Below are positions 3,831 to 64,000 of a DNA stretch of 64,000 bases, piece after piece. The DNA is from Blastocladiella emersonii ATCC 22665 (taxonomy: Eukaryota > Fungi > Blastocladiomycota): assembly GCA_025594325.1 (NCBI GenBank), contig JANHCV010000018.1:149279-213278 (forward strand). Direction: 5' to 3'. The position numbers and the translations under genes are program-made. How positions within the stretch are numbered: the first letter of the stretch is position 1; each line of letters opens with the position of its first letter. The notes beneath the pieces were generated by a model that searched no databases, had not been told where the DNA came from, and saw only the letters and a program-made list of their open reading frames with translations.

Positions 3831-4094
3831 CTCGCTAATTTACCCGGCTACTTAAAATTGACCCGGACCACTGTCATTCCCATCCATTAGAGCCTGTGAA
3901 AACTCGACAGACTCACCTGCTGTTGCAACTTGATTATTGTGCACAGTTCCGTTGGGTTTCAAGTGTACCCGCAGTCGCACCTGCTACAGAACAACTGGTT
4001 GTTGATGAGGCGAACCCAAGGCGGCGAACTTTCCATACAACCACAGGTTTGTGATCATGCAAAAGTGACATTGTGAAGTCAAAGCGCGATTTGA

Positions 4095-6182: not shown

Positions 6183-6568
6183 TCAATCTGGCCCAAGAGC
6201 TCGTCCTCGCTCCCCCCTTCGCCAAACAGATCCGGTTAGATGTTCAGCATGCGCTGTATTTTGATGACGTCCCCGTTCCCACATCCTCCACTGCACTCCT
6301 CAAGATCCTGTCCACTGCACGCTGCGATGCGACTATCCGCTCCAAGTCCGCCCTCCTCTCCTTCCTCCACACCTCCCCTGACCCCGATGAGCACCCTGAC
6401 ATGCTTGCGACCTCACTGGCCATTGGCTCCGGCTCCCGCCCGCTCGATAAGCGCACCTCCAGCGCTGCGAACCGCGACATCGTCTATCGCGTTCGCCACC
6501 TCCTTGGGATCACACCCACTCGCTCACTACTGCACGCCCGCCATCCTACTCTAGTCACTTCACCGGTG

Positions 6569-6619
6569 TGTCCTAGGTGCCAAGTAGCCATTGACGACGG
6601 AAGCCACTGGATGATCTGC
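6569..6619 (+). other. C-terminal CCHC zinc knuckle of the non-LTR ORF
   Basis: CPRCQVAIDDGSHWMIC = C-x2-C-x8-H-x3-C, located downstream of RT/RNase H as in many non-LTR elements. Confidence 0.8.
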
Positions 6620-8555
6620 ACCCGTAACGCCGCGGCCGTGTCCGCCGCGCTGGGCTCTGCCCAAAAGTCCATTGAGCGGTATTCTTGCCGCGCCGCTGCC
6701 TCTGTTGCCGCCGCCGCCGCCGCTACTGCTGCGGCCGCATCCACTGCACGAGCACCGAATGCGCCCACTCCACCTCCACCTCCACCTGCACCACCACCGC
6801 CTCTCTCTCCTGTCCAAGGCGAGGACCTCAGCACGCCCGGCTACGCCATGGTCGGCGAGTCCATTGCTGGTGCAACTGACGCCCTCCACAACTTTGGCAC
6901 TCGACTCGCAGCGTCCATCTGGCGCGACCCCGACGCCCTCTCCCGCCTCGCCGGCTGCGTTCTACGCGTCCGCGACGTGTCGTTCGGCTCGCGGGCCCTC
7001 CAACTCGACCGCGCCCTCACCCGGCCCGTCCTCGCGGCCATCACGTCCGTCGCCTCCCGATCCCTCTGGCGCGGCGCCTGGCTCTCTCACTCTGCTGGCT
7101 GCACCGAGGCCGACCCACTCGATTTTTCTGAAGCTCCGCCGCACGAGCCGCGTGAGCGGGCCCACCGCCCATTTGGCCAGCCCATTGCCACACTCAAGTT
7201 CATCAACCGCCACCACTACTGCTCTCGCTGTCTGAGCTCGCTCCATTCCCACGTCCCCCACCCGTCTGGGCGTGAAGAAAACCCGCCCGTGTGCCCGCCG
7301 TCCACCGCGGCCCAGGCGGCTCTTGTTGCAGATCCCTCCGTCCGACTTTGGTTGCTCGGTTCCCCAAGGCACATTCGGTGATGTGACTAGACCAAGGATC
7401 GGCGCAGTCGACGCAAGTCCAGTGGCACCAGGTGTTTGCGCGCGGTACTGACCCATCCACTTTCTCTCGTTCTGACCACGATGAAACGCATGATCCGCCA
7501 CTGAATGGCGCTGACGCACAAAAGAAAAAGAAAAAGAAGGAGAAAAACAAAATAAAGAGAAACGCAACAAGAAGAACGTCCGCACAAAAAGATGGAAAAA
7601 CATCTGACGAACCTCACAGGCCATGCCCAATACCACAGCACTGCCACTGGTCCATTGGCATGTCCTCGCGCTCTAGCTGGTCACGCCAGCGTGTCTCTCT
7701 GCTCGGTCTCTCTTTACTGCTCTTCGTTCGCTCTCTTAGCTCGCTGCTCGAGCTCGCTCTCTCTTCGCCTCGTTCGCCCATCTCTCTCGTACTCCCCTCT
7801 CCTCCCACAATTCTTCCCCCTATGCTCCTCGACGTGCACGGTCCGGGCTTGTCGTACTGCGGCTTGCCCACAAAAAGGCTGCTGCCCGTTGCACAGTGGA
7901 TATTCTGGTTGCAGTCCACAACCGCAGTTAAGGAATAAATGCATTGGTTCCAAAATAAAGAGGGTTCCGAGCAGCTCCTCTGTCTATCCGCGTGAAACCA
8001 CTCACCCGCTGACGGACGTACACCGCGCACCGTGCAGCGCGCACAGCACACAGCGCCCGACGCACCCCGCGGTGCGCACACGGCGCAAACGGCCACCCTG
8101 GTGTCACACACACTCGCATGAACGGCAGGCATGCAAGGCGTCCTCAACTCAACAATGATTTATCATCCAGGCTTGCTACTCGCTCCAACGGGTGCGCCTG
8201 CCTGCCCTCCCGGTGCCGTTGATTGATTGATGGGTGCGCCAGCCCCTGTTGCCAGCCAAGTGGCAAGCAACACCACAGCACCTGCGTCGCCCTGGCCACC
8301 GTACCTTGGAAACAGCGTAGCAGCCGTACTGCTTCACAGGGCTGCAGAGGGCTGGCTGCGGAGGGCTGAGGCGGCAGGGCTCCTGCTGCAGGAAGGAGAC
8401 AGTGCTGGGGCCAAGGAGTGCTAGGGACGACAAACTGAATGGTGAATGACCCACACACCACATGCTCCTGGCAGGAGAGCGTGTGGGCGTGCGGGCCTGT
8501 GTCCGTGCGTGCCTGTGTCCGTGCGTGCCTGGATTAGACCTCCATCACAAGCGCC

Positions 8556-8631
8556 AAGTGACCAAGTGACCAAGGTGACCAAGTGACCAAGGTGACCAAG
8601 GTGACCACGGTGACCAAGGTGACCAAGTGAC
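8556..8631 (+). repeat. 8/9-bp minisatellite (AAGTGACC/AAGGTGACC, about 9 units), present in every unit
   Basis: Directly visible; a 17-bp shorter allele occurs in units 11, 13, 14, 15 and 16. Confidence 0.95.
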
Positions 8632-9044
8632 ACACAAGCACCAAGCTAGGGTGGCCGGGCGGCCATGGAACGTACTGCATGGGTACCAATACCGTGGACT
8701 GGCCGCGGCCATTAATCGCAGCACAGCCCTGCCTGGCTCAGGACGCGGCGGGCGTGGGAGGCGGGCAGGGTAGATAGGTAGCAGCAGCAGGACCTGGCTA
8801 GCTGGCTGTCAAACAGCACGAGTGAAGGGGTGCGTGAGGGAGGGTGTGTTGAATGAATGGATGGGTGGATGCAGGCAGACCTTCATACGTGTCGTGCGTG
8901 ATGAGGATTGGCTGGCCACTATCCACCCACCAACGCCATGGCATGGCTGCGGGTGTCGCTGCGTGCGCCTTGGCGGGTGGTAGTGGAGCTAAAGTGGTGT
9001 CGTGGGGCTCTTGGGGTCCCCTTTCCTTCCTGTCTGGCCTAGGT

Positions 9045-9059
9045 GGGTGGGTGGGTGGG
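9045..9059 (+). other. G-quadruplex-forming motif GGGTGGGTGGGTGGG, one per unit
   Basis: Four G3 tracts with single-T loops, a sequence class known to form stable parallel G4 in vitro; in vivo folding not shown. Confidence 0.7.
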
Positions 9060-9245
9060 CGGACGTAGCGCGCATGCGGGCGGGCAAGCTAGGAACGTTG
9101 CTCACGCAATGGATCATGTATTTCATGGAACGTAGTCTGGACAGCAGAGAGGGGGATGTCCGGCCCAATCGGACCCTCCACGAATCACAATATGCACGCA
9201 ATGAATTGACCGATGATAGGGCCGTACCAAACCAGCCACGTAGAC

Positions 9246-10152
9246 AATTGTCATGGTAGTCGAACAAAACCATATTCAAATCTTTGACTACACGCTTGTC
9301 CAGCTAGCCAGGGACCCATAAATCACAGTATCGACCCAACTAAATATTTGACAACGGAAAGATAGTAAACCAGCCTCGTACATAATTGTCATGGTACTCA
9401 AACAAAACCATATTCAAAACCTTGACTTCCCGCATGTCCAGCTGGCCAGGGACCCATAAATCACAGTATCAAACCGACAAAGTATCTGACAACAGAAATA
9501 TGGTAAAACAGCCACGCGGATAATTGTCATGGTACTCAATCAAAACCATATTCAAATCTTTGCTTTCCTGCATGTCCAGCTGGTTGAGGACCCATAAATC
9601 GTAACGTCAAAGCAACAGTATATCTGACCATAGAAGTATAGTAAACCAGCCACTCTGGCAACTGTCATGGTACTCAAACAAAACCATACTCAAATCTTCG
9701 ACTTCCCACATGTCCAGCAGGTTGGACACCCATAAATCACAGTATCAAACCAACGAAATATCTGACCACATGAGTATATATAACCGACCGCGTAGGTAAT
9801 TGTCTTGATACTCAAACAAAACCATATTCAAATCTTTCACTTCCCGCTTGTCCAGCTAGCCAGGGACCCATAAATCACAGTATCACAGCAACGCAATATC
9901 TGACCAAAGAAATATCGTAAACCAGGCACGTAGATAATTGTCATGGTACTCAAACAAAACCATAGTCAAATCTTCGAGTGCCCCATGTCCAGGTGGGCAA
10001 GGGCCTATAAATCACAGTATTGAACCAAGAAAACACCTGACTGACGATCGGGATGTATCAAACCCGCCACGCTGATAATTGTCATGGTACTCAAACATAA
10101 CCATACTCAGCCAAATCTTCGCATACCCTCACGTCCAGGTGGGCGAGGAACC
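9246..10152. repeat. Nested array of 138-bp subrepeats (6 full plus 1 partial, plus a degenerate half copy at about 9166-9245), present in every unit
   Basis: AATTGTCATGG-like heads at 9246, 9384, 9522, 9660, 9798, 9936 and 10077 (period 138; last 141). Copies are roughly 70-80% alike by eye. Confidence 0.95.
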
Positions 10153-10266
10153 AAAGCGCCAGATATTCAAATCTACCGCTTTGTGCACACTCCACTAGCC
10201 AACTCTTCGATCCCCTAATAATGGAGCCCGTCGTCAAAGTGCACGGTCCAATCAACTAAGTAAACA

Positions 10267-10350
10267 GCCAACCTGCCAGCCTGCCAACCTGCCAGCCTGC
10301 CAGCCTGCCAACCTGCCAACCTGTCAACCTGCCACCTTGCCTACCTGCTA
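10267..10350 (+). repeat. 8-bp minisatellite (CCTGCCAA/CCTGCCAG), present in every unit
   Basis: Directly visible; one extra 8-mer in all units except 1 and 9. Confidence 0.93.
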
Positions 10351-10609
10351 TCCGAACACCCACACCGCCTCGCAAGTCATTGGGGGCCCGCGCTCTCTGG
10401 TTGCCGTCCCAGCCAACAAACGAATGAATGATGAGCCCTGGCAGCCTGGCAGCCTGCCACACTGACAGCCTGACTGACAGCGCCCACCCAGTAGATATTA
10501 TCTATCTCGTAGGTAGTCTGGGACGACTTTGTTAGTCAATACACGACCAGTCTCCTCCTGGCTGCCGGCTCTGCTGTCCACTCCAAGTCCTGCATGATGA
10601 TGGGCCAAG

Positions 10610-11294
10610 GAGGGTTCCGAGCAGCCGCGGCCCAAGCGGCTCTTGTTGCAGATCCCTCCGTCCGACTTTGGTTGCTCGGTTCCCCAAGGCACATTCGGTG
10701 ATGTGACTAGACCAAGGATCGGCGCAGTCGACGCAAGTCCAGTGGCACCAGGTGTTTGCGCGCGGTACTGACCCATCCACTTTCTCTCGTTCTGACCACG
10801 ATGAAACGCATGATCCGCCACTGAATGGCGCTGACGCACAAAAGAAAAAGAAAAAGAAGGAGAAAAACAAAATAAAGAGAAACGCAACAAGAAGAACGTC
10901 CGCACAAAAAGATGGAAAAACATCTGACGAACCTCACAGGCCATGCCCAATACCACAGCACTGCCACTGGTCCATTGGCATGTCCTCGCGCTCTAGCTGG
11001 TCACGCCAGCGTGTCTCTCTGCTCGGTCTCTCTTTACTGCTCTTCGTTCGCTCTCTTAGCTCGCTGCTCGAGCTCGCTCTCTCTTCGCCTCGTTCGCCCA
11101 TCTCTCTCGTACTCCCCTCTCCTCCCACAATTCTTCCCCCTATGCTCCTCGACGTGCACGGTCCGGGCTTGTCGTACTGCGGCTTGCCCACAAAAAGGCT
11201 GCTGCCCGTTGCACAGTGGATATTCTGGTTGCAGTCCACAACCGCAGTTAAGGAATAAATGCATTGGTTCCAAAATAAAGAGGGTTCCGAGCAG
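10610..11294 (+). repeat. 15-bp (16 with an ambiguous C) target-site duplication GAGGGTTCCGAGCAG around each short copy
   Basis: ...GGGCCAAG-GAGGGTTCCGAGCAG-[CCGCGG...AAAATAAA]-GAGGGTTCCGAGCAG-CTCCTC... Confidence 0.93.
10625..11279 (+). mobile_element. 655-bp 3' fragment of the non-LTR element (first of 16 short copies, one per unit; last at 60724-61378)
   Basis: Matches 7305-7959 except one G/A at 7315. Flanked by direct repeat GAGGGTTCCGAGCAG at 10610-10624 and 11280-11294; ends in AATAAA plus an 8-nt A-rich tail. Confidence 0.95.
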
Positions 11295-14200
11295 CTCCTC
11301 TGTCTATCCGCGTGAAACCACTCACCCGCTGACGGACGTACACCGCGCACCGTGCAGCGCGCACAGCACACAGCGCCCGACGCACCCCGCGGTGCGCACA
11401 CGGCGCAAACGGCCACCCTGGTGTCACACACACTCGCATGAACGGCAGGCATGCAAGGCGTCCTCAACTCAACAATGATTTATCATCCAGGCTTGCTACT
11501 CGCTCCAACGGGTGCGCCTGCCTGCCCTCCCGGTGCCGTTGATTGATTGATGGGTGCGCCAGCCCCTGTTGCCAGCCAAGTGGCAAGCAACACCACAGCA
11601 CCTGCGTCGCCCTGGCCACCGTACCTTGGAAACAGCGTAGCAGCCGTACTGCTTCACAGGGCTGCAGAGGGCTGGCTGCGGAGGGCTGAGGCGGCAGGGC
11701 TCCTGCTGCAGGAAGGAGACAGTGCTGGGGCCAAGGAGTGCTAGGGACGACAAACTGAATGGTGAATGACCCACACACCACATGCTCCTGGCAGGAGAGC
11801 GTGTGGGCGTGCGGGCCTGTGTCCGTGCGTGCCTGTGTCCGTGCGTGCCTGGATTAGACCTCCATCACAAGCGCCAAGTGACCAAGTGACCAAGGTGACC
11901 AAGTGACCAAGGTGACCAAGGTGACCACGGTGACCAAGGTGACCAAGTGACACACAAGCACCAAGCTAGGGTGGCCGGGCGGCCATGGAACGTACTGCAT
12001 GGGTACCAATACCGTGGACTGGCCGCGGCCATTAATCGCAGCACAGCCCTGCCTGGCTCAGGACGCGGCGGGCGTGGGAGGCGGGCAGGGTAGATAGGTA
12101 GCAGCAGCAGGACCTGGCTAGCTGGCTGTCAAACAGCACGAGTGAAGGGGTGCGTGAGGGAGGGTGTGTTGAATGAATGGATGGGTGGATGCAGGCAGAC
12201 CTTCATACGTGTCGTGCGTGATGAGGATTGGCTGGCCACCATCCACCCACCAACGCCATGGCATGGCTGCGGGTGTCGCTGCGTGCGCCTTGGCGGGTGG
12301 TGTTGGTGGGTGGTGTTGGTGGGTGCTGTGGTGGTAGTGGAGCTAAAGTGGTGTCGTGGGGCTCTTGGGGTCCCCTTTCCTTCCTGTCTGGCCTAGGTGG
12401 GTGGGTGGGTGGGCGGACGTAGCGCGCATGCGGGCGGGCAAGCTAGGAACGTTGCTCACGCAATGGATCATGTATTTCATGGAACGTAGTCTGGACAGCA
12501 GAGAGGGGGATGTCCGGCCCAATCGGACCCTCCACGAATCACAATATGCACGCAATGAATTGACCGATGATAGGGCCGTACCAAACCAGCCACGTAGACA
12601 ATTGTCATGGTAGTCGAACAAAACCATATTCAAATCTTTGACTACACGCTTGTCCAGCTAGCCAGGGACCCATAAATCACAGTATCGACCCAACTAAATA
12701 TTTGACAACGGAAAGATAATAAACCAGCCTCGTACATAATTGTCATGGTACTCAAACAAAACCATAGTCAAATCTTTGACCTCCCGCATGCCCATGTGGG
12801 CAAGGACCTATAGATCAGAGTATCGTACCAAGAAAATATCTGACCATGGAAATATAGTATACCAGCCACGTAGGTAATTGTCATGGCACTCAAACAAAAC
12901 CATAGTCAAGTCTTTGACTATTCACAGGTCCAGCTGGTTAAGGACCCATAAATCGTAACGTCAAAGCAACAGTATATCTGACCATAGAAGTATAGTAAAC
13001 CAGCCACTCTGGCAACTGTCATGGTACTCAAACAAAACCATACTCAAATCTTCGACTTCCCACATGTCCAGCAGGTTGGACACCCATAAATCACAGTATC
13101 AAACCAACGAAATATCTGACCACATGAGTATATATAACCGACCGCGTAGGTAATTGTCTTGATACTCAAACAAAACCATATTCAAATCTTTCACTTCCCG
13201 CTTGTCCAGCTAGCCAGGGACCCATAAATCACAGTATCACAGCAACGCAATATCTGACCAAAGAAATATCGTAAACCAGGCACGTAGATAATTGTCATGG
13301 TACTCAAACAAAACCATAGTCAAATCTTCGAGTGCCCCATGTCCAGGTGGGCAAGGGCCTATAAATCACAGTATTGAACCAAGAAAACACCTGACTGACG
13401 ATCGGGATGTATCAAACCCGCCACGCTGATAATTGTCATGGTACTCAAACATAACCATACTCAGCCAAATCTTCGCATACCCTCACGTCCAGGTGGGCGA
13501 GGAACCAAAGCGCCAGATATTCAAATCTACCGCTTTGTGCACACTCCACTAGCCAACTCTTCGATCCCCTAATAATGGAGCCCGTCGTCAAAGTGCACGG
13601 TCCAATCAACTAAGTAAACAGCCAACCTGCCAGCCTGCCAACCTGCCAGCCTGCCAGCCTGCCAGCCTGCCAACCTGCCAACCTGTCAACCTGCCACCTT
13701 GCCTACCTGCTATCCGAACACCCACACCGCCTCGCAAGTCATTGGGGGCCCGCGCTCTCTGGTTGCCGTCCCAGCCAACAAACGAATGAATGATGAGCCC
13801 TGGCAGCCTGGCAGCCTGCCACACTGACAGCCTGACTGACAGCGCCCACCCAGTAGATATTATCTATCTCGTAGGTAGTCTGGGACGACTTTGTTAGTCA
13901 ATACACGACCAGTCTCCTCCTGGCTGCCGGCTCTGCTGTCCACTCCAAGTCCTGCATGATGATGGGCCAAGGAGGGTTCCGAGCAGCCGCGGCCCAAGCG
14001 GCTCTTGTTGCAGATCCCTCCGTCCGACTTTGGTTGCTCGGTTCCCCAAGGCACATTCGGTGATGTGACTAGACCAAGGATCGGCGCAGTCGACGCAAGT
14101 CCAGTGGCACCAGGTGTTTGCGCGCGGTACTGACCCATCCACTTTCTCTCGTTCTGACCACGATGAAACGCATGATCCGCCACTGAATGGCGCTGACGCA

Positions 14201-17200
14201 CAAAAGAAAAAGAAAAAGAAGGAGAAAAACAAAATAAAGAGAAACGCAACAAGAAGAACGTCCGCACAAAAAGATGGAAAAACATCTGACGAACCTCACA
14301 GGCCATGCCCAATACCACAGCACTGCCACTGGTCCATTGGCATGTCCTCGCGCTCTAGCTGGTCACGCCAGCGTGTCTCTCTGCTCGGTCTCTCTTTACT
14401 GCTCTTCGTTCGCTCTCTTAGCTCGCTGCTCGAGCTCGCTCTCTCTTCGCCTCGTTCGCCCATCTCTCTCGTACTCCCCTCTCCTCCCACAATTCTTCCC
14501 CCTATGCTCCTCGACGTGCACGGTCCGGGCTTGTCGTACTGCGGCTTGCCCACAAAAAGGCTGCTGCCCGTTGCACAGTGGATATTCTGGTTGCAGTCCA
14601 CAACCGCAGTTAAGGAATAAATGCATTGGTTCCAAAAAAAAGAGGGTTCCGAGCAGCTCCTCTGTCTATCCGCGTGAAACCACTCACCCGCTGACGGACG
14701 TACACCGCGCACCGTGCAGCGCGCACAGCACACAGCGCCCGACGCACCCCGCGGTGCGCACACGGCGCAAACGGCCACCCTGGTGTCACACACACTCGCA
14801 TGAACGGCAGGCATGCAAGGCGTCCTCAACTCAACAATGATTTATCATCCAGGCTTGCTACTCGCTCCAACGGGTGCGCCTGCCTGCCCTCCCGGTGCCG
14901 TTGATTGATTGATGGGTGCGCCAGCCCCTGTTGCCAGCCAAGTGGCAAGCAACACCACAGCACCTGCGTCGCCCTGGCCACCGTACCTTGGAAACAGCGT
15001 AGCAGCCGTACTGCTTCACAGGGCTGCAGAGGGCTGGCTGCGGAGGGCTGAGGCGGCAGGGCTCCTGCTGCAGGAAGGAGACAGTGCTGGGGCCAAGGAG
15101 TGCTAGGGACGACAAACTGAATGGTGAATGACCCACACACCACATGCTCCTGGCAGGAGAGCGTGTGGGCGTGCGGGCCTGTGTCCGTGCGTGCCTGTGT
15201 CCGTGCGTGCCTGGATTAGACCTCCATCACAAGCGCCAAGTGACCAAGTGACCAAGGTGACCAAGTGACCAAGGTGACCAAGGTGACCACGGTGACCAAG
15301 GTGACCAAGTGACACACAAGCACCAAGCTAGGGTGGCCGGGCGGCCATGGAACGTACTGCATGGGTACCAATACCGTGGACTGGCCGCGGCCATTAATCG
15401 CAGCACAGCCCTGCCTGGCTCAGGACGCGGCGGGCGTGGGAGGCGGGCAGGGTAGATAGGTAGCAGCAGCAGGACCTGGCTAGCTGGCTGTCAAACAGCA
15501 CGAGTGAAGGGGTGCGTGAGGGAGGGTGTGTTGAATGAATGGATGGGTGGATGCAGGCAGACCTTCATACGTGTCGTGCGTGATGAGGATTGGCTGGCCA
15601 CCATCCACCCACCAACGCCATGGCATGGCTGCGGGTGTCGCTGCGTGCGCCTTGGCGGGTGGTGTTGGTGGGTGGTGTTGGTGGGTGCTGTGGTGGTAGT
15701 GGAGCTAAAGTGGTGTCGTGGGGCTCTTGGGGTCCCCTTTCCTTCCTGTCTGGCCTAGGTGGGTGGGTGGGTGGGCGGACGTAGCGCGCATGCGGGCGGG
15801 CAAGCTAGGAACGTTGCTCACGCAATGGATCATGTATTTCATGGAACGTAGTCTGGACAGCAGAGAGGGGGATGTCCGGCCCAATCGGACCCTCCACGAA
15901 TCACAATATGCACGCAATGAATTGACCGATGATAGGGCCGTACCAAACCAGCCACGTAGACAATTGTCATGGTAGTCGAACAAAACCATATTCAAATCTT
16001 TGACTACACGCTTGTCCAGCTAGCCAGGGACCCATAAATCACAGTATCGACCCAACTAAATATTTGACAACGGAAAGATAATAAACCAGCCTCGTACATA
16101 ATTGTCATGGTACTCAAACAAAACCATAGTCAAATCTTTGACCTCCCGCATGCCCATGTGGGCAAGGACCTATAGATCAGAGTATCGTACCAAGAAAATA
16201 TCTGACCATGGAAATATAGTATACCAGCCACGTAGGTAATTGTCATGGCACTCAAACAAAACCATAGTCAAGTCTTTGACTATTCACAGGTCCAGCTGGT
16301 TAAGGACCCATAAATCGTAACGTCAAAGCAACAGTATATCTGACCATAGAAGTATAGTAAACCAGCCACTCTGGCAACTGTCATGGTACTCAAACAAAAC
16401 CATACTCAAATCTTCGACTTCCCACATGTCCAGCAGGTTGGACACCCATAAATCACAGTATCAAACCAACGAAATATCTGACCACATGAGTATATATAAC
16501 CGACCGCGTAGGTAATTGTCTTGATACTCAAACAAAACCATATTCAAATCTTTCACTTCCCGCTTGTCCAGCTAGCCAGGGACCCATAAATCACAGTATC
16601 ACAGCAACGCAATATCTGACCAAAGAAATATCGTAAACCAGGCACGTAGATAATTGTCATGGTACTCAAACAAAACCATAGTCAAATCTTCGAGTGCCCC
16701 ATGTCCAGGTGGGCAAGGGCCTATAAATCACAGTATTGAACCAAGAAAACACCTGACTGACGATCGGGATGTATCAAACCCGCCACGCTGATAATTGTCA
16801 TGGTACTCAAACATAACCATACTCAGCCAAATCTTCGCATACCCTCACGTCCAGGTGGGCGAGGAACCAAAGCGCCAGATATTCAAATCTACCGCTTTGT
16901 GCACACTCCACTAGCCAACTCTTCGATCCCCTAATAATGGAGCCCGTCGTCAAAGTGCACGGTCCAATCAACTAAGTAAACAGCCAACCTGCCAGCCTGC
17001 CAACCTGCCAGCCTGCCAGCCTGCCAGCCTGCCAACCTGCCAACCTGTCAACCTGCCACCTTGCCTACCTGCTATCCGAACACCCACACCGCCTCGCAAG
17101 TCATTGGGGGCCCGCGCTCTCTGGTTGCCGTCCCAGCCAACAAACGAATGAATGATGAGCCCTGGCAGCCTGGCAGCCTGCCACACTGACAGCCTGACTG

Positions 17201-20200
17201 ACAGCGCCCACCCAGTAGATATTATCTATCTCGTAGGTAGTCTGGGACGACTTTGTTAGTCAATACACGACCAGTCTCCTCCTGGCTGCCGGCTCTGCTG
17301 TCCACTCCAAGTCCTGCATGATGATGGGCCAAGGAGGGTTCCGAGCAGCCGCGGCCCAAGCGGCTCTTGTTGCAGATCCCTCCGTCCGACTTTGGTTGCT
17401 CGGTTCCCCAAGGCACATTCGGTGATGTGACTAGACCAAGGATCGGCGCAGTCGACGCAAGTCCAGTGGCACCAGGTGTTTGCGCGCGGTACTGACCCAT
17501 CCACTTTCTCTCGTTCTGACCACGATGAAACGCATGATCCGCCACTGAATGGCGCTGACGCACAAAAGAAAAAGAAAAAGAAGGAGAAAAACAAAATAAA
17601 GAGAAACGCAACAAGAAGAACGTCCGCACAAAAAGATGGAAAAACATCTGACGAACCTCACAGGCCATGCCCAATACCACAGCACTGCCACTGGTCCATT
17701 GGCATGTCCTCGCGCTCTAGCTGGTCACGCCAGCGTGTCTCTCTGCTCGGTCTCTCTTTACTGCTCTTCGTTCGCTCTCTTAGCTCGCTGCTCGAGCTCG
17801 CTCTCTCTTCGCCTCGTTCGCCCATCTCTCTCGTACTCCCCTCTCCTCCCACAATTCTTCCCCCTATGCTCCTCGACGTGCACGGTCCGGGCTTGTCGTA
17901 CTGCGGCTTGCCCACAAAAAGGCTGCTGCCCGTTGCACAGTGGATATTCTGGTTGCAGTCCACAACCGCAGTTAAGGAATAAATGCATTGGTTCCAAAAT
18001 AAAGAGGGTTCCGAGCAGCTCCTCTGTCTATCCGCGTGAAACCACTCACCCGCTGACGGACGTACACCGCGCACCGTGCAGCGCGCACAGCACACAGCGC
18101 CCGACGCACCCCGCGGTGCGCACACGGCGCAAACGGCCACCCTGGTGTCACACACACTCGCATGAACGGCAGGCATGCAAGGCGTCCTCAACTCAACAAT
18201 GATTTATCATCCAGGCTTGCTACTCGCTCCAACGGGTGCGCCTGCCTGCCCTCCCGGTGCCGTTGATTGATTGATGGGTGCGCCAGCCCCTGTTGCCAGC
18301 CAAGTGGCAAGCAACACCACAGCACCTGCGTCGCCCTGGCCACCGTACCTTGGAAACAGCGTAGCAGCCGTACTGCTTCACAGGGCTGCAGAGGGCTGGC
18401 TGCGGAGGGCTGAGGCGGCAGGGCTCCTGCTGCAGGAAGGAGACAGTGCTGGGGCCAAGGAGTGCTAGGGACGACAAACTGAATGGTGAATGACCCACAC
18501 ACCACATGCTCCTGGCAGGAGAGCGTGTGGGCGTGCGGGCCTGTGTCCGTGCGTGCCTGTGTCCGTGCGTGCCTGGATTAGACCTCCATCACAAGCGCCA
18601 AGTGACCAAGTGACCAAGGTGACCAAGTGACCAAGGTGACCAAGGTGACCACGGTGACCAAGGTGACCAAGTGACACACAAGCACCAAGCTAGGGTGGCC
18701 GGGCGGCCATGGAACGTACTGCATGGGTACCAATACCGTGGACTGGCCGCGGCCATTAATCGCAGCACAGCCCTGCCTGGCTCAGGACGCGGCGGGCGTG
18801 GGAGGCGGGCAGGGTAGATAGGTAGCAGCAGCAGGACCTGGCTAGCTGGCTGTCAAACAGCACGAGTGAAGGGGTGCGTGAGGGAGGGTGTGTTGAATGA
18901 ATGGATGGGTGGATGCAGGCAGACCTTCATACGTGTCGTGCGTGATGAGGATTGGCTGGCCACCATCCACCCACCAACGCCATGGCATGGCTGCGGGTGT
19001 CGCTGCGTGCGCCTTGGCGGGTGGTGTTGGTGGGTGGTGTTGGTGGGTGCTGTGGTGGTAGTGGAGCTAAAGTGGTGTCGTGGGGCTCTTGGGGTCCCCT
19101 TTCCTTCCTGTCTGGCCTAGGTGGGTGGGTGGGTGGGCGGACGTAGCGCGCATGCGGGCGGGCAAGCTAGGAACGTTGCTCACGCAATGGATCATGTATT
19201 TCATGGAACGTAGTCTGGACAGCAGAGAGGGGGATGTCCGGCCCAATCGGACCCTCCACGAATCACAATATGCACGCAATGAATTGACCGATGATAGGGC
19301 CGTACCAAACCAGCCACGTAGACAATTGTCATGGTAGTCGAACAAAACCATATTCAAATCTTTGACTACACGCTTGTCCAGCTAGCCAGGGACCCATAAA
19401 TCACAGTATCGACCCAACTAAATATTTGACAACGGAAAGATAATAAACCAGCCTCGTACATAATTGTCATGGTACTCAAACAAAACCATAGTCAAATCTT
19501 TGACCTCCCGCATGCCCATGTGGGCAAGGACCTATAGATCAGAGTATCGTACCAAGAAAATATCTGACCATGGAAATATAGTATACCAGCCACGTAGGTA
19601 ATTGTCATGGCACTCAAACAAAACCATAGTCAAGTCTTTGACTATTCACAGGTCCAGCTGGTTAAGGACCCATAAATCGTAACGTCAAAGCAACAGTATA
19701 TCTGACCATAGAAGTATAGTAAACCAGCCACTCTGGCAACTGTCATGGTACTCAAACAAAACCATACTCAAATCTTCGACTTCCCACATGTCCAGCAGGT
19801 TGGACACCCATAAATCACAGTATCAAACCAACGAAATATCTGACCACATGAGTATATATAACCGACCGCGTAGGTAATTGTCTTGATACTCAAACAAAAC
19901 CATATTCAAATCTTTCACTTCCCGCTTGTCCAGCTAGCCAGGGACCCATAAATCACAGTATCACAGCAACGCAATATCTGACCAAAGAAATATCGTAAAC
20001 CAGGCACGTAGATAATTGTCATGGTACTCAAACAAAACCATAGTCAAATCTTCGAGTGCCCCATGTCCAGGTGGGCAAGGGCCTATAAATCACAGTATTG
20101 AACCAAGAAAACACCTGACTGACGATCGGGATGTATCAAACCCGCCACGCTGATAATTGTCATGGTACTCAAACATAACCATACTCAGCCAAATCTTCGC

Positions 20201-53200: not shown

Positions 53201-56200
53201 ATAAATCACAGTATCAAACCAACGAAATATCTGACCACATGAGTATATATAACCGACCGCGTAGGTAATTGTCTTGATACTCAAACAAAACCATATTCAA
53301 ATCTTTCACTTCCCGCTTGTCCAGCTAGCCAGGGACCCATAAATCACAGTATCACAGCAACGCAATATCTGACCAAAGAAATATCGTAAACCAGGCACGT
53401 AGATAATTGTCATGGTACTCAAACAAAACCATAGTCAAATCTTCGAGTGCCCCATGTCCAGGTGGGCAAGGGCCTATAAATCACAGTATTGAACCAAGAA
53501 AACACCTGACTGACGATCGGGATGTATCAAACCCGCCACGCTGATAATTGTCATGGTACTCAAACATAACCATACTCAGCCAAATCTTCGCATACCCTCA
53601 CGTCCAGGTGGGCAAGGAACCAAAGCGCCAGATATTCAAATCTACCGCTTTGTGCACACTCCACTAGCCAACTCTTCGATCCCCTAATAATGGAGCCCGT
53701 CGTCAAAGTGCACGGTCCAATCAACTAAGTAAACAGCCAACCTGCCAGCCTGCCAACCTGCCAGCCTGCCAGCCTGCCAGCCTGCCAACCTGCCAACCTG
53801 TCAACCTGCCACCTTGCCTACCTGCTATCCGAACACCCACACCGCCTCGCAAGTCATTGGGGGCCCGCGCTCTCTGGTTGCCGTCCCAGCCAACAAACGA
53901 ATGAATGATGAGCCCTGGCAGCCTGGCAGCCTGCCACACTGACAGCCTGACTGACAGCGCCCACCCAGTAGATATTATCTATCTCGTAGGTAGTCTGGGA
54001 CGACTTTGTTAGTCAATACACGACCAGTCTCCTCCTGGCTGCCGGCTCTGCTGTCCACTCCAAGTCCTGCATGATGATGGGCCAAGGAGGGTTCCGAGCA
54101 GCCGCGGCCCAAGCGGCTCTTGTTGCAGATCCCTCCGTCCGACTTTGGTTGCTCGGTTCCCCAAGGCACATTCGGTGATGTGACTAGACCAAGGATCGGC
54201 GCAGTCGACGCAAGTCCAGTGGCACCAGGTGTTTGCGCGCGGTACTGACCCATCCACTTTCTCTCGTTCTGACCACGATGAAACGCATGATCCGCCACTG
54301 AATGGCGCTGACGCACAAAAGAAAAAGAAAAAGAAGGAGAAAAACAAAATATAGGGAAACGCAAAAAGAAGAACGTCCGCACAAAAAGATGGAAAAACAT
54401 CTGACGAACCTCACAGGCCATGCCCAATACCACAGCACTGCCACTGGTCCATTGGCATGTCCTCGCGCTCTAGCTGGTCACGCCAGCGTGTCTCTCTGCT
54501 CGGTCTCTCTTTACTGCTCTTCGTTCGCTCTCTTAGCTCGCTGCTCGAGCTCGCTCTCTCTTCGCCTCGTTCGCCCATCTCTCTCGTACTCCCCTCTCCT
54601 CCCACAATTCTTCCCCCTATGCTCCTCGACGTGCACGGTCCGGGCTTGTCGTACTGCGGCTTGCCCACAAAAAGGCTGCTGCCCGTTGCACAGTGGATAT
54701 TCTGGTTGCAGTCCACAACCGCAGTTAAGGAATAAATGCATTGGTTCCAAAAAAAAGAGGGTTCCGAGCAGCTCCTCTGTCTATCCGCGTGAAACCACTC
54801 ACCCGCTGACGGACGTACACCGCGCACCGTGCAGCGCGCACAGCACACAGCGCCCGACGCACCCCGCGGTGCGCACACGGCGCAAACGGCCACCCTGGTG
54901 TCACACACACTCGCATGAACGGCAGGCATGCAAGGCGTCCTCAACTCAACAATGATTTATCATCCAGGCTTGCTACTCGCTCCAACGGGTGCGCCTGCCT
55001 GCCCTCCCGGTGCCGTTGATTGATTGATGGGTGCGCCAGCCCCTGTTGCCAGCCAAGTGGCAAGCAACACCACAGCACCTGCGTCGCCCTGGCCACCGTA
55101 CCTTGGAAACAGCGTAGCAGCCGTACTGCTTCACAGGGCTGCAGAGGGCTGGCTGCGGAGGGCTGAGGCGGCAGGGCTCCTGCTGCAGGAAGGAGACAGT
55201 GCTGGGGCCAAGGAGTGCTAGGGACGACAAACTGAATGGTGAATGACCCACACACCACATGCTCCTGGCAGGAGAGCGTGTGGGCGTGCGGGCCTGTGTC
55301 CGTGCGTGCCTGTGTCCGTGCGTGCCTGGATTAGACCTCCATCACAAGCGCCAAGTGACCAAGTGACCAAGGTGACCAAGGTGACCACGGTGACCAAGGT
55401 GACCAAGTGACACACAAGCACCAAGCTAGGGTGGCCGGGCGGCCATGGAACGTACTGCATGGGTACCAATACCGTGGACTGGCCGCGGCCATTAATCGCA
55501 GCACAGCCCTGCCTGGCTCAGGACGCGGCGGGCGTGGGAGGCGGGCAGGGTAGATAGGTAGCAGCAGCAGGACCTGGCTAGCTGGCTGTCAAACAGCACG
55601 AGTGAAGGGGTGCGTGAGGGAGGGTGTGTTGAATGAATGGATGGGTGGATGCAGGCAGACCTTCATACGTGTCGTGCGTGATGAGGATTGGCTGGCCACC
55701 ATCCACCCACCAACGCCATGGCATGGCTGCGGGTGTCGCTGCGTGCGCCTTGGCGGGTGGTAGTGGAGCTAAAGTGGTGTCGTGGGGCTCTTGGGGTCCC
55801 CTTTCCTTCCTGTCTGGCCTAGGTGGGTGGGTGGGTGGGCGGACGTAGCGCGCATGCGGGCGGGCAAGCTAGGAACGTTGCTCACGCAATGGATCATGTA
55901 TTTCATGGAACGTAGTCTGGACAGCAGAGAGGGGGATGTCCGGCCCAATCGGACCCTCCACGAATCACAATATGCACGCAATGAATTGACCGATGATAGG
56001 GCCGTACCAAACCAGCCACGTAGACAATTGTCATGGTAGTCGAACAAAACCATATTCAAATCTTTGACTACACGCTTGTCCAGCTAGCCAGGGACCCATA
56101 AATCACAGTATCGACCCAACTAAATATTTGACAACGGAAAGATAGTAAACCAGCCTCGTACATAATTGTCATGGTACTCAAACAAAACCATATTCAAAAC

Positions 56201-59200
56201 CTTGACTTCCCGCATGTCCAGCTGGCCAGGGACCCATAAATCACAGTATCAAACCGACAAAGTATCTGACAACAGAAATATGGTAAAACAGCCACGCGGA
56301 TAATTGTCATGGTACTCAATCAAAACCATATTCAAATCTTTGCTTTCCTGCATGTCCAGCTGGTTGAGGACCCATAAATCGTAACGTCAAAGCAACAGTA
56401 TATCTGACCATAGAAGTATAGTAAACCAGCCACTCTGGCAACTGTCATGGTACTCAAACAAAACCATACTCAAATCTTCGACTTCCCACATGTCCAGCAG
56501 GTTGGACACCCATAAATCACAGTATCAAACCAACGAAATATCTGACCACATGAGTATATATAACCGACCGCGTAGGTAATTGTCTTGATACTCAAACAAA
56601 ACCATATTCAAATCTTTCACTTCCCGCTTGTCCAGCTAGCCAGGGACCCATAAATCACAGTATCACAGCAACGCAATATCTGACCAAAGAAATATCGTAA
56701 ACCAGGCACGTAGATAATTGTCATGGTACTCAAACAAAACCATAGTCAAATCTTCGAGTGCCCCATGTCCAGGTGGGCAAGGGCCTATAAATCACAGTAT
56801 TGAACCAAGAAAACACCTGACTGACGATCGGGATGTATCAAACCCGCCACGCTGATAATTGTCATGGTACTCAAACATAACCATACTCAGCCAAATCTTC
56901 GCATACCCTCACGTCCAGGTGGGCAAGGAACCAAAGCGCCAGATATTCAAATCTACCGCTTTGTGCACACTCCACTAGCCAACTCTTCGATCCCCTAATA
57001 ATGGAGCCCGTCGTCAAAGTGCACGGTCCAATCAACTAAGTAAACAGCCAACCTGCCAGCCTGCCAACCTGCCAGCCTGCCAGCCTGCCAGCCTGCCAAC
57101 CTGCCAACCTGTCAACCTGCCACCTTGCCTACCTGCTATCCGAACACCCACACCGCCTCGCAAGTCATTGGGGGCCCGCGCTCTCTGGTTGCCGTCCCAG
57201 CCAACAAACGAATGAATGATGAGCCCTGGCAGCCTGGCAGCCTGCCACACTGACAGCCTGACTGACAGCGCCCACCCAGTAGATATTATCTATCTCGTAG
57301 GTAGTCTGGGACGACTTTGTTAGTCAATACACGACCAGTCTCCTCCTGGCTGCCGGCTCTGCTGTCCACTCCAAGTCCTGCATGATGATGGGCCAAGGAG
57401 GGTTCCGAGCAGCCGCGGCCCAAGCGGCTCTTGTTGCAGATCCCTCCGTCCGACTTTGGTTGCTCGGTTCCCCAAGGCACATTCGGTGATGTGACTAGAC
57501 CAAGGATCGGCGCAGTCGACGCAAGTCCAGTGGCACCAGGTGTTTGCGCGCGGTACTGACCCATCCACTTTCTCTCGTTCTGACCACGATGAAACGCATG
57601 ATCCGCCACTGAATGGCGCTGACGCACAAAAGAAAAAGAAAAAGAAGGAGAAAAACAAAATAAAGAGAAACGCAAAAAGAAGAACGTCCGCACAAAAAGA
57701 TGGAAAAACATCTGACGAACCTCACAGGCCATGCCCAATACCACAGCACTGCCACTGGTCCATTGGCATGTCCTCGCGCTCTAGCTGGTCACGCCAGCGT
57801 GTCTCTCTGCTCGGTCTCTCTTTACTGCTCTTCGTTCGCTCTCTTAGCTCGCTGCTCGAGCTCGCTCTCTCTTCGCCTCGTTCGCCCATCTCTCTCGTAC
57901 TCCCCTCTCCTCCCACAATTCTTCCCCCTATGCTCCTCGACGTGCACGGTCCGGGCTTGTCGTACTGCGGCTTGCCCACAAAAAGGCTGCTGCCCGTTGC
58001 ACAGTGGATATTCTGGTTGCAGTCCACAACCGCAGTTAAGGAATAAATGCATTGGTTCCAAAAAAAAGAGGGTTCCGAGCAGCTCCTCTGTCTATCCGCG
58101 TGAAACCACTCACCCGCTGACGGACGTACACCGCGCACCGTGCAGCGCGCACAGCACACAGCGCCCGACGCACCCCGCGGTGCGCACACGGCGCAAACGG
58201 CCACCCTGGTGTCACACACACTCGCATGAACGGCAGGCATGCAAGGCGTCCTCAACTCAACAATGATTTATCATCCAGGCTTGCTACTCGCTCCAACGGG
58301 TGCGCCTGCCTGCCCTCCCGGTGCCGTTGATTGATTGATGGGTGCGCCAGCCCCTGTTGCCAGCCAAGTGGCAAGCAACACCACAGCACCTGCGTCGCCC
58401 TGGCCACCGTACCTTGGAAACAGCGTAGCAGCCGTACTGCTTCACAGGGCTGCAGAGGGCTGGCTGCGGAGGGCTGAGGCGGCAGGGCTCCTGCTGCAGG
58501 AAGGAGACAGTGCTGGGGCCAAGGAGTGCTAGGGACGACAAACTGAATGGTGAATGACCCACACACCACATGCTCCTGGCAGGAGAGCGTGTGGGCGTGC
58601 GGGCCTGTGTCCGTGCGTGCCTGTGTCCGTGCGTGCCTGGATTAGACCTCCATCACAAGCGCCAAGTGACCAAGTGACCAAGGTGACCAAGGTGACCACG
58701 GTGACCAAGGTGACCAAGTGACACACAAGCACCAAGCTAGGGTGGCCGGGCGGCCATGGAACGTACTGCATGGGTACCAATACCGTGGACTGGCCGCGGC
58801 CATTAATCGCAGCACAGCCCTGCCTGGCTCAGGACGCGGCGGGCGTGGGAGGCGGGCAGGGTAGATAGGCAGCAGCAGCAGGACCTGGCTAGCTGGCTGT
58901 CAAACAGCACGAGTGAAGGGGTGCGTGAGGGAGGGTGTGTTGAATGAATGGATGGGTGGATGCAGGCAGACCTTCATACGTGTCGTGCGTGATGAGGATT
59001 GGCTGGCCACCATCCACCCACCAACGCCATGGCATGGCTGCGGGTGTCGCTGCGTGCGCCTTGGCGGGTGGTAGTGGAGCTAAAGTGGTGTCGTGGGGCT
59101 CTTGGGGTCCCCTTTCCTTCCTGTCTGGCCTAGGTGGGTGGGTGGGTGGGCGGACGTAGCGCGCATGCGGGCGGGCAAGCTAGGAACGTTGCTCACGCAA

Positions 59201-62200
59201 TGGATCATGTATTTCATGGAACGTAGTCTGGACAGCAGAGAGGGGGATGTCCGGCCCAATCGGACCCTCCACGAATCACAATATGCACGCAATGAATTGA
59301 CCGATGATAGGGCCGTACCAAACCAGCCACGTAGACAATTGTCATGGTAGTCGAACAAAACCATATTCAAATCTTTGACTACACGCTTGTCCAGCTAGCC
59401 AGGGACCCATAAATCACAGTATCGACCCAACTAAATATTTGACAACGGAAAGATAGTAAACCAGCCTCGTACATAATTGTCATGGTACTCAAACAAAACC
59501 ATATTCAAAACCTTGACTTCCCGCATGTCCAGCTGGCCAGGGACCCATAAATCACAGTATCAAACCGACAAAGTATCTGACAACAGAAATATGGTAAAAC
59601 AGCCACGCGGATAATTGTCATGGTACTCAATCAAAACCATATTCAAATCTTTGCTTTCCTGCATGTCCAGCTGGTTGAGGACCCATAAATCGTAACGTCA
59701 AAGCAACAGTATATCTGACCATAGAAGTATAGTAAACCAGCCACTCTGGCAACTGTCATGGTACTCAAACAAAACCATACTCAAATCTTCGACTTCCCAC
59801 ATGTCCAGCAGGTTGGACACCCATAAATCACAGTATCAAACCAACGAAATATCTGACCACATGAGTATATATAACCGACCGCGTAGGTAATTGTCTTGAT
59901 ACTCAAACAAAACCATATTCAAATCTTTCACTTCCCGCTTGTCCAGCTAGCCAGGGACCCATAAATCACAGTATCACAGCAACGCAATATCTGACCAAAG
60001 AAATATCGTAAACCAGGCACGTAGATAATTGTCATGGTACTCAAACAAAACCATAGTCAAATCTTCGAGTGCCCCATGTCCAGGTGGGCAAGGGCCTATA
60101 AATCACAGTATTGAACCAAGAAAACACCTGACTGACGATCGGGATGTATCAAACCCGCCACGCTGATAATTGTCATGGTACTCAAACATAACCATACTCA
60201 GCCAAATCTTCGCATACCCTCACGTCCAGGTGGGCAAGGAACCAAAGCGCCAGATATTCAAATCTACCGCTTTGTGCACACTCCACTAGCCAACTCTTCG
60301 ATCCCCTAATAATGGAGCCCGTCGTCAAAGTGCACGGTCCAATCAACTAAGTAAACAGCCAACCTGCCAGCCTGCCAACCTGCCAGCCTGCCAGCCTGCC
60401 AGCCTGCCAACCTGCCAACCTGTCAACCTGCCACCTTGCCTACCTGCTATCCGAACACCCACACCGCCTCGCAAGTCATTGGGGGCCCGCGCTCTCTGGT
60501 TGCCGTCCCAGCCAACAAACGAATGAATGATGAGCCCTGGCAGCCTGGCAGCCTGCCACACTGACAGCCTGACTGACAGCGCCCACCCAGTAGATATTAT
60601 CTATCTCGTAGGTAGTCTGGGACGACTTTGTTAGTCAATACACGACCAGTCTCCTCCTGGCTGCCGGCTCTGCTGTCCACTCCAAGTCCTGCATGATGAT
60701 GGGCCAAGGAGGGTTCCGAGCAGCCGCGGCCCAAGCGGCTCTTGTTGCAGATCCCTCCGTCCGACTTTGGTTGCTCGGTTCCCCAAGGCACATTCGGTGA
60801 TGTGACTAGACCAAGGATCGGCGCAGTCGACGCAAGTCCAGTGGCACCAGGTGTTTGCGCGCGGTACTGACCCATCCACTTTCTCTCGTTCTGACCACGA
60901 TGAAACGCATGATCCGCCACTGAATGGCGCTGACGCACAAAAGAAAAAGAAAAAGAAGGAGAAAAACAAAATATAGGGAAACGCAAAAAGAAGAACGTCC
61001 GCACAAAAAGATGGAAAAACATCTGACGAACCTCACAGGCCATGCCCAATACCACAGCACTGCCACTGGTCCATTGGCATGTCCTCGCGCTCTAGCTGGT
61101 CACGCCAGCGTGTCTCTCTGCTCGGTCTCTCTTTACTGCTCTTCGTTCGCTCTCTTAGCTCGCTGCTCGAGCTCGCTCTCTCTTCGCCTCGTTCGCCCAT
61201 CTCTCTCGTACTCCCCTCTCCTCCCACAATTCTTCCCCCTATGCTCCTCGACGTGCACGGTCCGGGCTTGTCGTACTGCGGCTTGCCCACAAAAAGGCTG
61301 CTGCCCGTTGCACAGTGGATATTCTGGTTGCAGTCCACAACCGCAGTTAAGGAATAAATGCATTGGTTCCAAAATAAAGAGGGTTCCGAGCAGCTCCTCT
61401 GTCTATCCGCGTGAAACCACTCACCCGCTGACGGACGTACACCGCGCACCGTGCAGCGCGCACAGCACACAGCGCCCGACGCACCCCGCGGTGCGCACAC
61501 GGCGCAAACGGCCACCCTGGTGTCACACACACTCGCATGAACGGCAGGCATGCAAGGCGTCCTCAACTCAACAATGATTTATCATCCAGGCTTGCTACTC
61601 GCTCCAACGGGTGCGCCTGCCTGCCCTCCCGGTGCCGTTGATTGATTGATGGGTGCGCCAGCCCCTGTTGCCAGCCAAGTGGCAAGCAACACCACAGCAC
61701 CTGCGTCGCCCTGGCCACCGTACCTTGGAAACAGCGTAGCAGCCGTACTGCTTCACAGGGCTGCAGAGGGCTGGCTGCGGAGGGCTGAGGCGGCAGGGCT
61801 CCTGCTGCAGGAAGGAGACAGTGCTGGGGCCAAGGAGTGCTAGGGACGACAAACTGAATGGTGAATGACCCACACACCACATGCTCCTGGCAGGAGAGCG
61901 TGTGGGCGTGCGGGCCTGTGTCCGTGCGTGCCTGTGTCCGTGCGTGCCTGGATTAGACCTCCATCACAAGCGCCAAGTGACCAAGTGACCAAGGTGACCA
62001 AGTGACCAAGGTGACCAAGGTGACCACGGTGACCAAGGTGACCAAGTGACACACAAGCACCAAGCTAGGGTGGCCGGGCGGCCATGGAACGTACTGCATG
62101 GGTACCAATACCGTGGACTGGCCGCGGCCATTAATCGCAGCACAGCCCTGCCTGGCTCAGGACGCGGCAGGCGTGGGAGGCGGGCAGGGTAGATAGGTAG

Positions 62201-64000
62201 CAGCAGCAGGACCTGGCTAGCTGGCTGTCAAACAGCACGAGTGAAGGGGTGCGTGAGGGAGGGTGTGTTGAATGAATGGATGGGTGGATGCAGGCAGACC
62301 TTCATACGTGTCGTGCGTGATGAGGATTGGCTGGCCACCATCCACCCACCAACGCCATGGCATGGCTGCGGGTGTCGCTGCGTGCGCCTTGGCGGGTGGT
62401 AGTGGAGCTAAAGTGGTGTCGTGGGGCTCTTGGGGTCCCCTTTCCTTCCTGTCTGGCCTAGGTGGGTGGGTGGGTGGGCGGACGTAGCGCGCATGCGGGC
62501 GGGCAAGCTAGGAACGTTGCTCACGCAATGGATCATGTATTTCATGGAACGTAGTCTGGACAGCAGAGAGGGGGATGTCCGGCCCAATCGGACCCTCCAC
62601 GAATCACAATATGCACGCAATGAATTGACCGATGATAGGGCCGTACCAAACCAGCCACGTAGACAATTGTCATGGTAGTCGAACAAAACCATATTCAAAT
62701 CTTTGACTACACGCTTGTCCAGCTAGCCAGGGACCCATAAATCACAGTATCGACCCAACTAAATATTTGACAACGGAAAGATAGTAAACCAGCCTCGTAC
62801 ATAATTGTCATGGTACTCAAACAAAACCATATTCAAAACCTTGACTTCCCGCATGTCCAGCTGGCCAGGGACCCATAAATCACAGTATCGAACCAACAAA
62901 GTATCTGACGACAGAAATATGGTAAAACAGCCACGCGGATAATTGTCATGGTACTCAATCAAAACCATATTCAAATCTTTGCTTTCCTGCATGTCCAGCT
63001 GGTTGAGGACCCATAAATCGTAACGTCAAAGCAACAGTATATCTGACCATAGAAGTATAGTAAACCAGCCACTCTGGCAACTGTCATGGTACTCAAACAA
63101 AACCATACTCAAATCTTCGACTTCCCACATGTCCAGCAGGTTGGACACCCATAAATCACAGTATCAAACCAACGAAATATCTGACCACATGAGTATATAT
63201 AACCGACCGCGTAGGTAATTGTCTTGATACTCAAACAAAACCATATTCAAATCTTTCACTTCCCGCTTGTCCAGCTAGCCAGGGACCCATAAATCACAGT
63301 ATCACAGCAACGCAATATCTGACCAAAGAAATATCGTAAACCAGGCACGTAGATAATTGTCATGGTACTCAAACAAAACCATAGTCAAATCTTCGAGTGC
63401 CCCATGTCCAGGTGGGCAAGGGCCTATAAATCACAGTATTGAACCAAGAAAACACCTGACTGACGATCGGGATGTATCAAACCCGCCACGCTGATAATTG
63501 TCATGGTACTCAAACATAACCATACTCAGCCAAATCTTCGCATACCCTCACGTCCAGGTGGGCAAGGAACCAAAGCGCCAGATATTCAAATCTACCGCTT
63601 TGTGCACACTCCACTAGCCAACTCTTCGATCCCCTAATAATGGAGCCCGTCGTCAAAGTGCACGGTCCAATCAACTAAGTAAACAGCCAACCTGCCAGCC
63701 TGCCAACCTGCCAGCCTGCCAGCCTGCCAGCCTGCCAACCTGCCAACCTGTCAACCTGCCACCTTGCCTACCTGCTATCCGAACACCCACACCGCCTCGC
63801 AAGTCATTGGGGGCCCGCGCTCTCTGGTTGCCGTCCCAGCCAACAAACGAATGAATGATGAGCCCTGGCAGCCTGGCAGCCTGCCACACTGACAGCCTGA
63901 CTGACAGCGCCCACCCAGTAGATATTATCTATCTCGTAGGTAGTCTGGGACGACTTTGTTAGTCAATACACGACCAGTCTCCTCCTGGCTGCCGGCTCTG

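Follow-up and report, generated by a model that had tools for sequence, protein, structure and literature searches.

Can one truncated retrotransposon come to occupy the same position in every unit of a tandem array, or did it arrive there many times? This question is raised by a 64,000-nt stretch of the genome of the zoosporic fungus Blastocladiella emersonii ATCC 22665 (GenBank assembly GCA_025594325.1, contig JANHCV010000018.1, positions 149,279 to 213,278 of the forward strand), referred to here as the window. Beyond a gene-bearing flank and a long copy of a non-long-terminal-repeat (non-LTR) retrotransposon, the window holds 17 units of 3.3 kb arranged head to tail, each composed of a non-coding host unit of approximately 2.65 kb and the 655-bp 3′ end of the retrotransposon. 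Based on the anatomy of the units and on their depth in public reads, it is very probable that a long interspersed nuclear element (LINE) was inserted once into an already tandem macrosatellite and was amplified together with its unit, and that untagged units (those lacking the insertion) have remained more numerous. Structural heterochromatin is the leading guess for the role of the array.

One insertion shared by the units of the array

When the array is cut at the motif that follows each retrotransposon 3′ end, the complete units measure 3311, 3320, 3328 or 3362 bp. Using Tandem Repeats Finder on the window, we found a block of 6.4 copies of a 138-bp sequence 17 times, at a spacing of 3311-3362 bp. 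The 5′ breakpoint of the retrotransposon fragment, CCGCGG, lies directly after GAGGGTTCCGAGCAG and is common to 16 of the 16 short copies, all of which end in AAAATAAA or AAAAAAAA followed by an identical 15-mer. A C follows on both sides, so that this direct repeat may be counted as either 15 or 16 bp. The fragment thus bears the hallmarks of an insertion, i.e., a tail of A8 or AAAATAAA, a 5′ truncation at CCGCGG, and a flanking direct repeat of 15-16 bp, and the 16 copies vary at four sites in total. Independent target-primed insertions would differ in their 5′ ends; therefore, the shared breakpoint indicates one insertion event. The combination of a shared breakpoint with a shared duplication cannot arise by chance.

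A first-pass annotation of this DNA had proposed that a single insertion was amplified, in agreement with the common 5′ breakpoint, the common duplication and the near-identity of the copies. Its statement that every unit carries the same 5′-truncated insertion is correct for the window, where the array starts at 7960 and all 16 complete units are tagged, but does not extend to the family, in which untagged units are commoner.

The 15-mer was also considered as the junction of a tandem duplication, rather than as a target-site duplication. This was rejected, since duplicating a segment made of the element 3′ end and the host would not explain the presence of the 15 bp at both ends; the uninterrupted site that appears in the reads, described below, also speaks against it.

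Read depth and the probable uninterrupted target site

The abundance of the repeat was estimated from four public DNA runs holding the unit (X1-X4), which derive from one sample, probably the assembled one (no RNA run was listed); these reads are a check on the assembler and do not speak to how other strains behave. Depth was taken as the summed word depth of Logan contigs, which is a rough measure, and the region compared, 3400-9200, runs from the gene flank through the long element into the first part of the host unit. The single-copy flank had a depth of 37 in X1, 7.4 in X2, 141 in X3 and 0 in X4, and in each of the first three runs one long contig covered 3400-4083 or 3400-4160 at this depth. 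The 5′ part of the element was found at approximately 4-12 times the single-copy depth, followed by a rise of approximately 100-fold at 7280-7305, and its last 655 bp at approximately 440-1450 times. The host unit reached approximately 10700 (X1), 2500 (X2) and 1500 (X3) times the single-copy depth and was not measurable on this scale in X4. The overlap of short contigs may inflate the depth of repeats up to approximately 2-fold, which still leaves the unit at many hundreds of copies. Since the window contains 17 units, the assembly under-represents the repeat and is not over-expanded; the possibility that the array is an over-expanded assembly artefact, raised by the first-pass annotation as a potential refutation, accordingly fails. 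The published description of the genome reports that 247 contigs were purged to 21 and mentions no satellite (PMC9730499).

The ratio of host to retrotransposon 3′ depth was 7.4 in X1, 2.7 in X2, 3.4 in X3 and 2.3 in X4. Because the host is 2.3-7.4 times deeper than the fragment, most units must lack the insertion, and the tagged units form a minority sub-family. The earlier suggestion that the insertion had swept the whole array family is contradicted by this excess. Additionally, contigs that align to the host from 7960 onward have, in all four runs, a loose end just before this position that reads as the left-flank letters of the unit (...GATGATGGGCCAAG or ...CTGCATGATGATGGGCCAAG), so that the left flank stands directly before the 15-mer. 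This arrangement bears out the proposal that the host unit was already tandem when it was hit. A 31-mer that had been suggested as a probe for the empty site is absent from the window, but such a site appears to exist in the reads. Together, the loose ends and the excess of host depth make a good, though not conclusive, case for an empty site that holds the duplicated bases once; the aligned lengths of these contigs are not given.

Several other junctions were observed in the reads. Contigs at 7172-7321, at approximately 100-250 times the single-copy depth and with 3-4 sites differing from the window, represent a second, longer class of the 5′-truncated element that has also been amplified and that does not occur in the window. 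The element tail (7955-7961) is joined to host position 9173 (9173-9179) through a short A/G filler in X2 and X4, and to a trace extent in X3; this junction, which was not found in the window, is either a second insertion or a deletion derivative. The satellite is a large target and was probably hit repeatedly, each amplified class still having the appearance of one event. Run X3 additionally contains a host-unit variant in which 90 bp (9082-9171) are replaced by 17 other letters, at approximately 4-5% of the host depth, and additional loose ends, at 8230, suggest other sub-families or borders of arrays.

Anatomy of the host unit

Counting the duplicated 15-mer once, the host unit is 2641-2692 bp long, and all length differences between units are indels in microsatellites or short tracts. 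In order, it comprises a GC-rich segment with (GTGACCAAG)n and G-rich tracts, the block of 138-bp monomers, (CCTGCCAR)n and the target site; besides the LINE fragment and the monomers, the complete unit holds at least three microsatellites. A (GGGT)n tract with quadruplex-forming potential is located at 9045-9062, just upstream of the monomer block, and recurs in every unit.

The first-pass annotation had described the host unit as lacking any recognisable protein, ribosomal RNA, transfer RNA (tRNA) or small nuclear RNA, and our searches for these and other known RNAs likewise came back blank. The host unit has no open reading frame (ORF) longer than 105 aa and no Pfam match; its longest stop-free stretch, of 129 codons, has a translation that is not protein-like and no homologue among 5.8 billion proteins. 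No tRNA was found in it, and Rfam gave no match at the gathering score for the whole window, or at E<=1 for the first two units. A hidden gene was thus rejected on the grounds of the missing Pfam match, the junk-like translations and the lack of a protein homologue. An origin of the host unit from the element or from the gene flank was likewise rejected, since comparison with both gave nothing in blastn and only noise in tblastx. When metagenome contigs were scanned for exact matches to the monomer core, no relatives of the 138-bp monomer emerged.

The monomers are far more diverged among themselves (Table 1) than the whole units, which are more than 99.8% identical, a pattern that would suggest an old host with a young tag. 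The observed/expected CpG ratio of the host unit, 0.68, is below that of the retrotransposon fragment (1.00), the long copy (1.10) and the genes (1.13); this depletion fits an old repeat, possibly under long-term cytosine methylation, that took in a young insert, although it is only a hint. In summary of its anatomy, the host unit is a composite macrosatellite carrying a passenger LINE fragment.

Unit haplotypes and the spread of the tag

Two haplotypes can be distinguished among the units: A comprises units 1 and 9-17, and B comprises units 2-8. They are separated by approximately 42 substitutions, as compared with 0-7 over 3.3 kb within a haplotype. Nearly all of these substitutions are concentrated in a single short patch within the monomer block (Table 1). 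Conversion of this patch from another monomer of the unit was rejected, as its best match, of 84%, is to its own counterpart; the B patch was probably converted from a diverged 138-bp array located elsewhere.

Within block B, units 2, 4, 5 and 7 are identical, and a variant of the retrotransposon tail recurs with a period of three units. Among the A units, 13 equals 15, 14 is close to 16, and units 1 and 9 are nearly the same. These super-periods are the trace left by conversion and by in-register unequal exchange that proceeded one to three units at a time. Nothing requires rolling-circle copying.

The long element at the border of the array

The array copy in the window is joined to the genes through the long element, the 5′ junction of which is covered: single-copy contigs in three runs confirmed the passage from gene to element. 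The long copy is itself 5′-truncated, its RVT_1 match starting at position 72 of the Pfam profile. It shows what would be expected of a parent element of the fragments, i.e., a partial reverse transcriptase (RT) with a weak match to the R2 RT in the PDB, an RNase_H domain (Pfam) and a CCHC motif recognised in the translation, followed by the ORF stop at 7381, a 3′ untranslated region (UTR) and a short A tail. Only four relatives of the element were found by sequence, the best of them 41% identical and the nearest named one, from another blastoclad, Sorochytrium, 25% identical, and its atlas neighbours are generic RT/RNase H clusters. Looking up the exact proteins of a junction ORF, of the RNase H ORF and of the kinase ORF gave no recorded match.

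In its last 655 bp, the long copy differs from the short copies at one site, 7315; in its 5′ part, dozens of sites set it apart from the commoner genomic copies represented by read contigs. The 15-mer was not found upstream of 4095, i.e., on the 5′ side of the long copy. The long copy is not the founder of the tagged units, since the truncated end directly adjoins the left copy of the duplication. The simplest reading of the border, with about an even chance of being correct, is homologous recombination between a fragment from the array and a longer copy of the same element that resided beside the kinase gene. The exchange could have been either an ectopic one or the integration of a circle.

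Other copies of the element were also seen in the reads. An extra G behind 5349 is present in about half or more of the contig depth contributed by them; this is where the long copy changes frame between RT and RNase H, and the border copy is therefore frameshifted relative to these copies. Contigs in all four runs join 4490 to 5542, which represents an element copy with a 1051-bp internal deletion, found at approximately 2 times the single-copy depth elsewhere in the genome.

Features of the window

The positions of the main features are given in Table 1. On the gene side, approximately 340 bp upstream of the long element, CCTAAACCTAAAACCTAAAG at 3735-3754 matches AAACCT, the reported telomere motif of the B. 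emersonii genome (PMC9730499). The resemblance is weak, a 12-mer match to the motif being expected by chance in 14 of 100 shuffles; these letters may be what remains of a chromosome end that was healed or fused.

Table 1. Coordinates of the gene flank, the long element and the array in the window
Feature	Position	Strand	Remarks
Single-copy gene flank	1-4094		includes the 383-bp spacer after the kinase ORF
LRR-repeat ORF	215-1501	minus	Pfam LRR families
Protein kinase ORF	2320-3711	plus	Pfam Pkinase, 3e-60
Long non-LTR retrotransposon copy at the gene/array border	~4095-7959	plus	3.86 kb; 5′ limit approximate (4095-4130)
Last 655 bp of the long copy	7305-7959	plus	segment present in every unit
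Tandem array	7960-64000	plus	16 complete units and 1 partial unit, each of host unit and retrotransposon fragment
Host unit 1	7960-10624	plus	2665 bp with both copies of the 15-mer
Block of 6.4 diverged 138-bp monomers	9229-10147	plus	monomers 71-87% identical
Left target-site duplication copy	10610-10624	plus	GAGGGTTCCGAGCAG; once per unit
First short retrotransposon copy	10625-11279	plus	655 bp; last 76 nt of ORF2, 3′ UTR, A8 tail
Right target-site duplication copy	11280-11294	plus	
Block of seven haplotype B units	11280-34813	plus	flanked by haplotype A on both sides
Patch of 222 bp in monomers 2-3	12719-12940	plus	40 of the ~42 A/B substitutions; same patch in units 2-8

Proposed history and alternative explanations

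Based on these observations, we propose the following history. A non-LTR retrotransposon encoding RT, RNase H and a CCHC motif would have inserted once into one unit by target-primed reverse transcription, leaving a copy truncated at its 5′ end to 655 bp, with a short A tail and a target-site duplication of 15-16 bp. As the anatomy of the units and the read depth suggest, conversion and in-register unequal exchange, one to three units at a time, would then have multiplied the fragment and its host together, until tagged units became a sub-family of a few hundred copies within a larger population of untagged ones. Less certainly, the long element at the border may have formed later as a recombinant of an array fragment and a resident longer copy.

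Among the alternatives, an extrachromosomal circle of tagged units could have been amplified and then integrated by recombination of its 655-bp fragment with the resident long copy. Such a course would account for a long copy that shares its last 655 bp almost exactly with the array and yet has no 15-mer on its 5′ side, for the variation of the copy-number estimate among the four libraries, and for the near-identity of units 1 and 9 on either side of the B block. We consider this origin unlikely: direct evidence of circles was not obtained, the same proximal junction also results from ordinary ectopic exchange, and the spread among libraries is more simply attributed to composition bias. It is exceedingly improbable that a site-specific element was inserted many times independently, as R1/R2 are in ribosomal DNA (rDNA) or CRE/SLACS in spliced-leader genes. 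The long copy does share the 3′ junction of the short copies, and the second tail junction at 9173 and the second, longer truncated class in the reads suggest that the satellite was hit more than once; however, all 16 copies share the 5′ truncation point and their variants, the second junction is at a different site, and the target is no recognisable gene, with neither an Rfam match nor a tRNA.

It is very improbable that the array was over-expanded by the assembler or stitched together from different arrays, although units 2, 4, 5 and 7 are identical, distinguishing variants lie approximately 10 kb apart, near the mean HiFi read length of 10.5 kb, and the switch between the A and B blocks could be a chimeric join. 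Against such an artefact stand a depth of hundreds to thousands of times the single-copy level, as compared with 17 assembled units, and the recovery of the gene-to-element junction in single-copy contigs of three runs. We also regard as quite improbable that each unit is a minus-strand transcription unit, i.e., a spliced non-coding RNA or a small gene, with the fragment lying antisense in an intron. A donor-like GGTGAG at 11326-11321 and an ACTAAC followed by an AG ending at 10518 (10518-10545), all on the minus strand, do bracket the insertion, and the candidate intron would measure approximately 140 nt without it; however, no ORF exceeds 105 aa, the stop-free stretches reach 129 codons at most, the composition is not protein-like, and neither Pfam, Rfam nor the protein searches returned a homologue.

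A single insertion amplified with its macrosatellite unit thus remains the preferred explanation, and several points weigh against it. For the empty-site contigs no aligned lengths are given, and that line of evidence alone is no proof. The depth is that of summed contigs from one sample, with a possible inflation of up to approximately 2-fold and a difference of approximately 7-fold between X1 and X3. In a near-identical array built from HiFi reads of approximately 10 kb, the precise count of units and their order may be wrong. The assembled sequence examined is that of this window, in which the array continues to the last position, and the structural role of the array is a guess.

Possible role and significance of the macrosatellite

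In view of the high copy number, the leading guess for the function of the array is that of structural heterochromatin, pericentromeric or centromeric, and not that of a gene array. Roughly nucleosome-sized monomers in higher-order units are a feature looked for in centromeric satellites; here, the 138-bp monomers account for only approximately one third of the unit. Fungal regional centromeres have been described as lacking canonical higher-order repeat arrays (PMC13682844), for which reason a centromeric role would be notable here. Specifically, the 2.65-kb macrosatellite might be the centromeric DNA of Blastocladiella, with approximately 700-1500 or more copies that would amount to 2-4 Mb, mostly purged from the 34-Mb assembly and unmentioned in the genome paper; we consider this proposal more doubtful than probable. 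If true, it would be the first higher-order satellite centromere in a fungus, and the LINE-tagged sub-family would be a built-in marker of array turnover and of exchange between chromosomes. For studies of centromeres and heterochromatin in early fungi, a satellite this large offers a concrete candidate, and tagged versus untagged units provide a ready assay of array dynamics. We found no paper describing this macrosatellite, and the repeat appears to be undescribed.

Comparison with known systems

A transposon fragment frozen in a satellite unit and co-amplified with it is a known pattern, and the event itself is ordinary; the notable part is the host, a kb-scale, highly homogenised macrosatellite present in hundreds to thousands of copies in a zoosporic fungus. 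Double insertion of transposons is one way in which satellites can arise (McGurk and Barbash 2018, PMC5932611). As in those cases, a retroelement sequence has here become part of a tandem array through unequal exchange; there, the element itself is the repeating unit, whereas here it is a passenger in an older host repeat. In Mucor circinelloides, Grem-LINE1 elements are found in pericentric regions (bioRxiv 10.1101/706580), so that in both early-diverging fungi LINEs adjoin a region considered as a possible centromere; a satellite array is absent from Mucor, and the one in B. emersonii has only a putative centromeric location.

The R1/R2 elements of rDNA and the CRE/SLACS elements of spliced-leader arrays are likewise non-LTR elements inside the units of tandem arrays. 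They represent repeated, independent and site-specific insertions into genes, in contrast to the single event copied here in a host that is not a gene; the array is not R1/R2-like because one 5′ end is found in 16 of 16 copies and the target is no gene. Closer to our case is the bovine satellite 1.711b, the unit of which was reportedly shown by Streeck in 1982 to be a satellite interrupted by a mobile-element-like insert, with both amplified together. Both systems have one insertion fixed in a sub-family by amplification and an uninterrupted satellite persisting alongside, and the insert described here is, unlike the bovine one, clearly a 5′-truncated LINE; its target-site duplication is intact, and a parent element persists in the genome.

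The classic macrosatellite is D4Z4, with a 3.3-kb unit carrying a retrocopy. Human macrosatellites and composite elements share with the present array a kb-scale unit that combines a transposon piece, satellite and simple repeats, is arranged head to tail and evolves as one. For the complete human genome, composite elements have been defined as combining at least three types of repeat, one of them a transposon (Hoyt et al., bioRxiv 10.1101/2021.07.12.451456); the array in the window has a kb-scale head-to-tail unit, at least three repeat types with a transposon among them, and high identity between units. It differs from the human macrosatellites in occurring in an early-diverging fungus, in having a unit without a gene, and in a far higher abundance in proportion to the size of the genome, of which it may make up several per cent to 10%.

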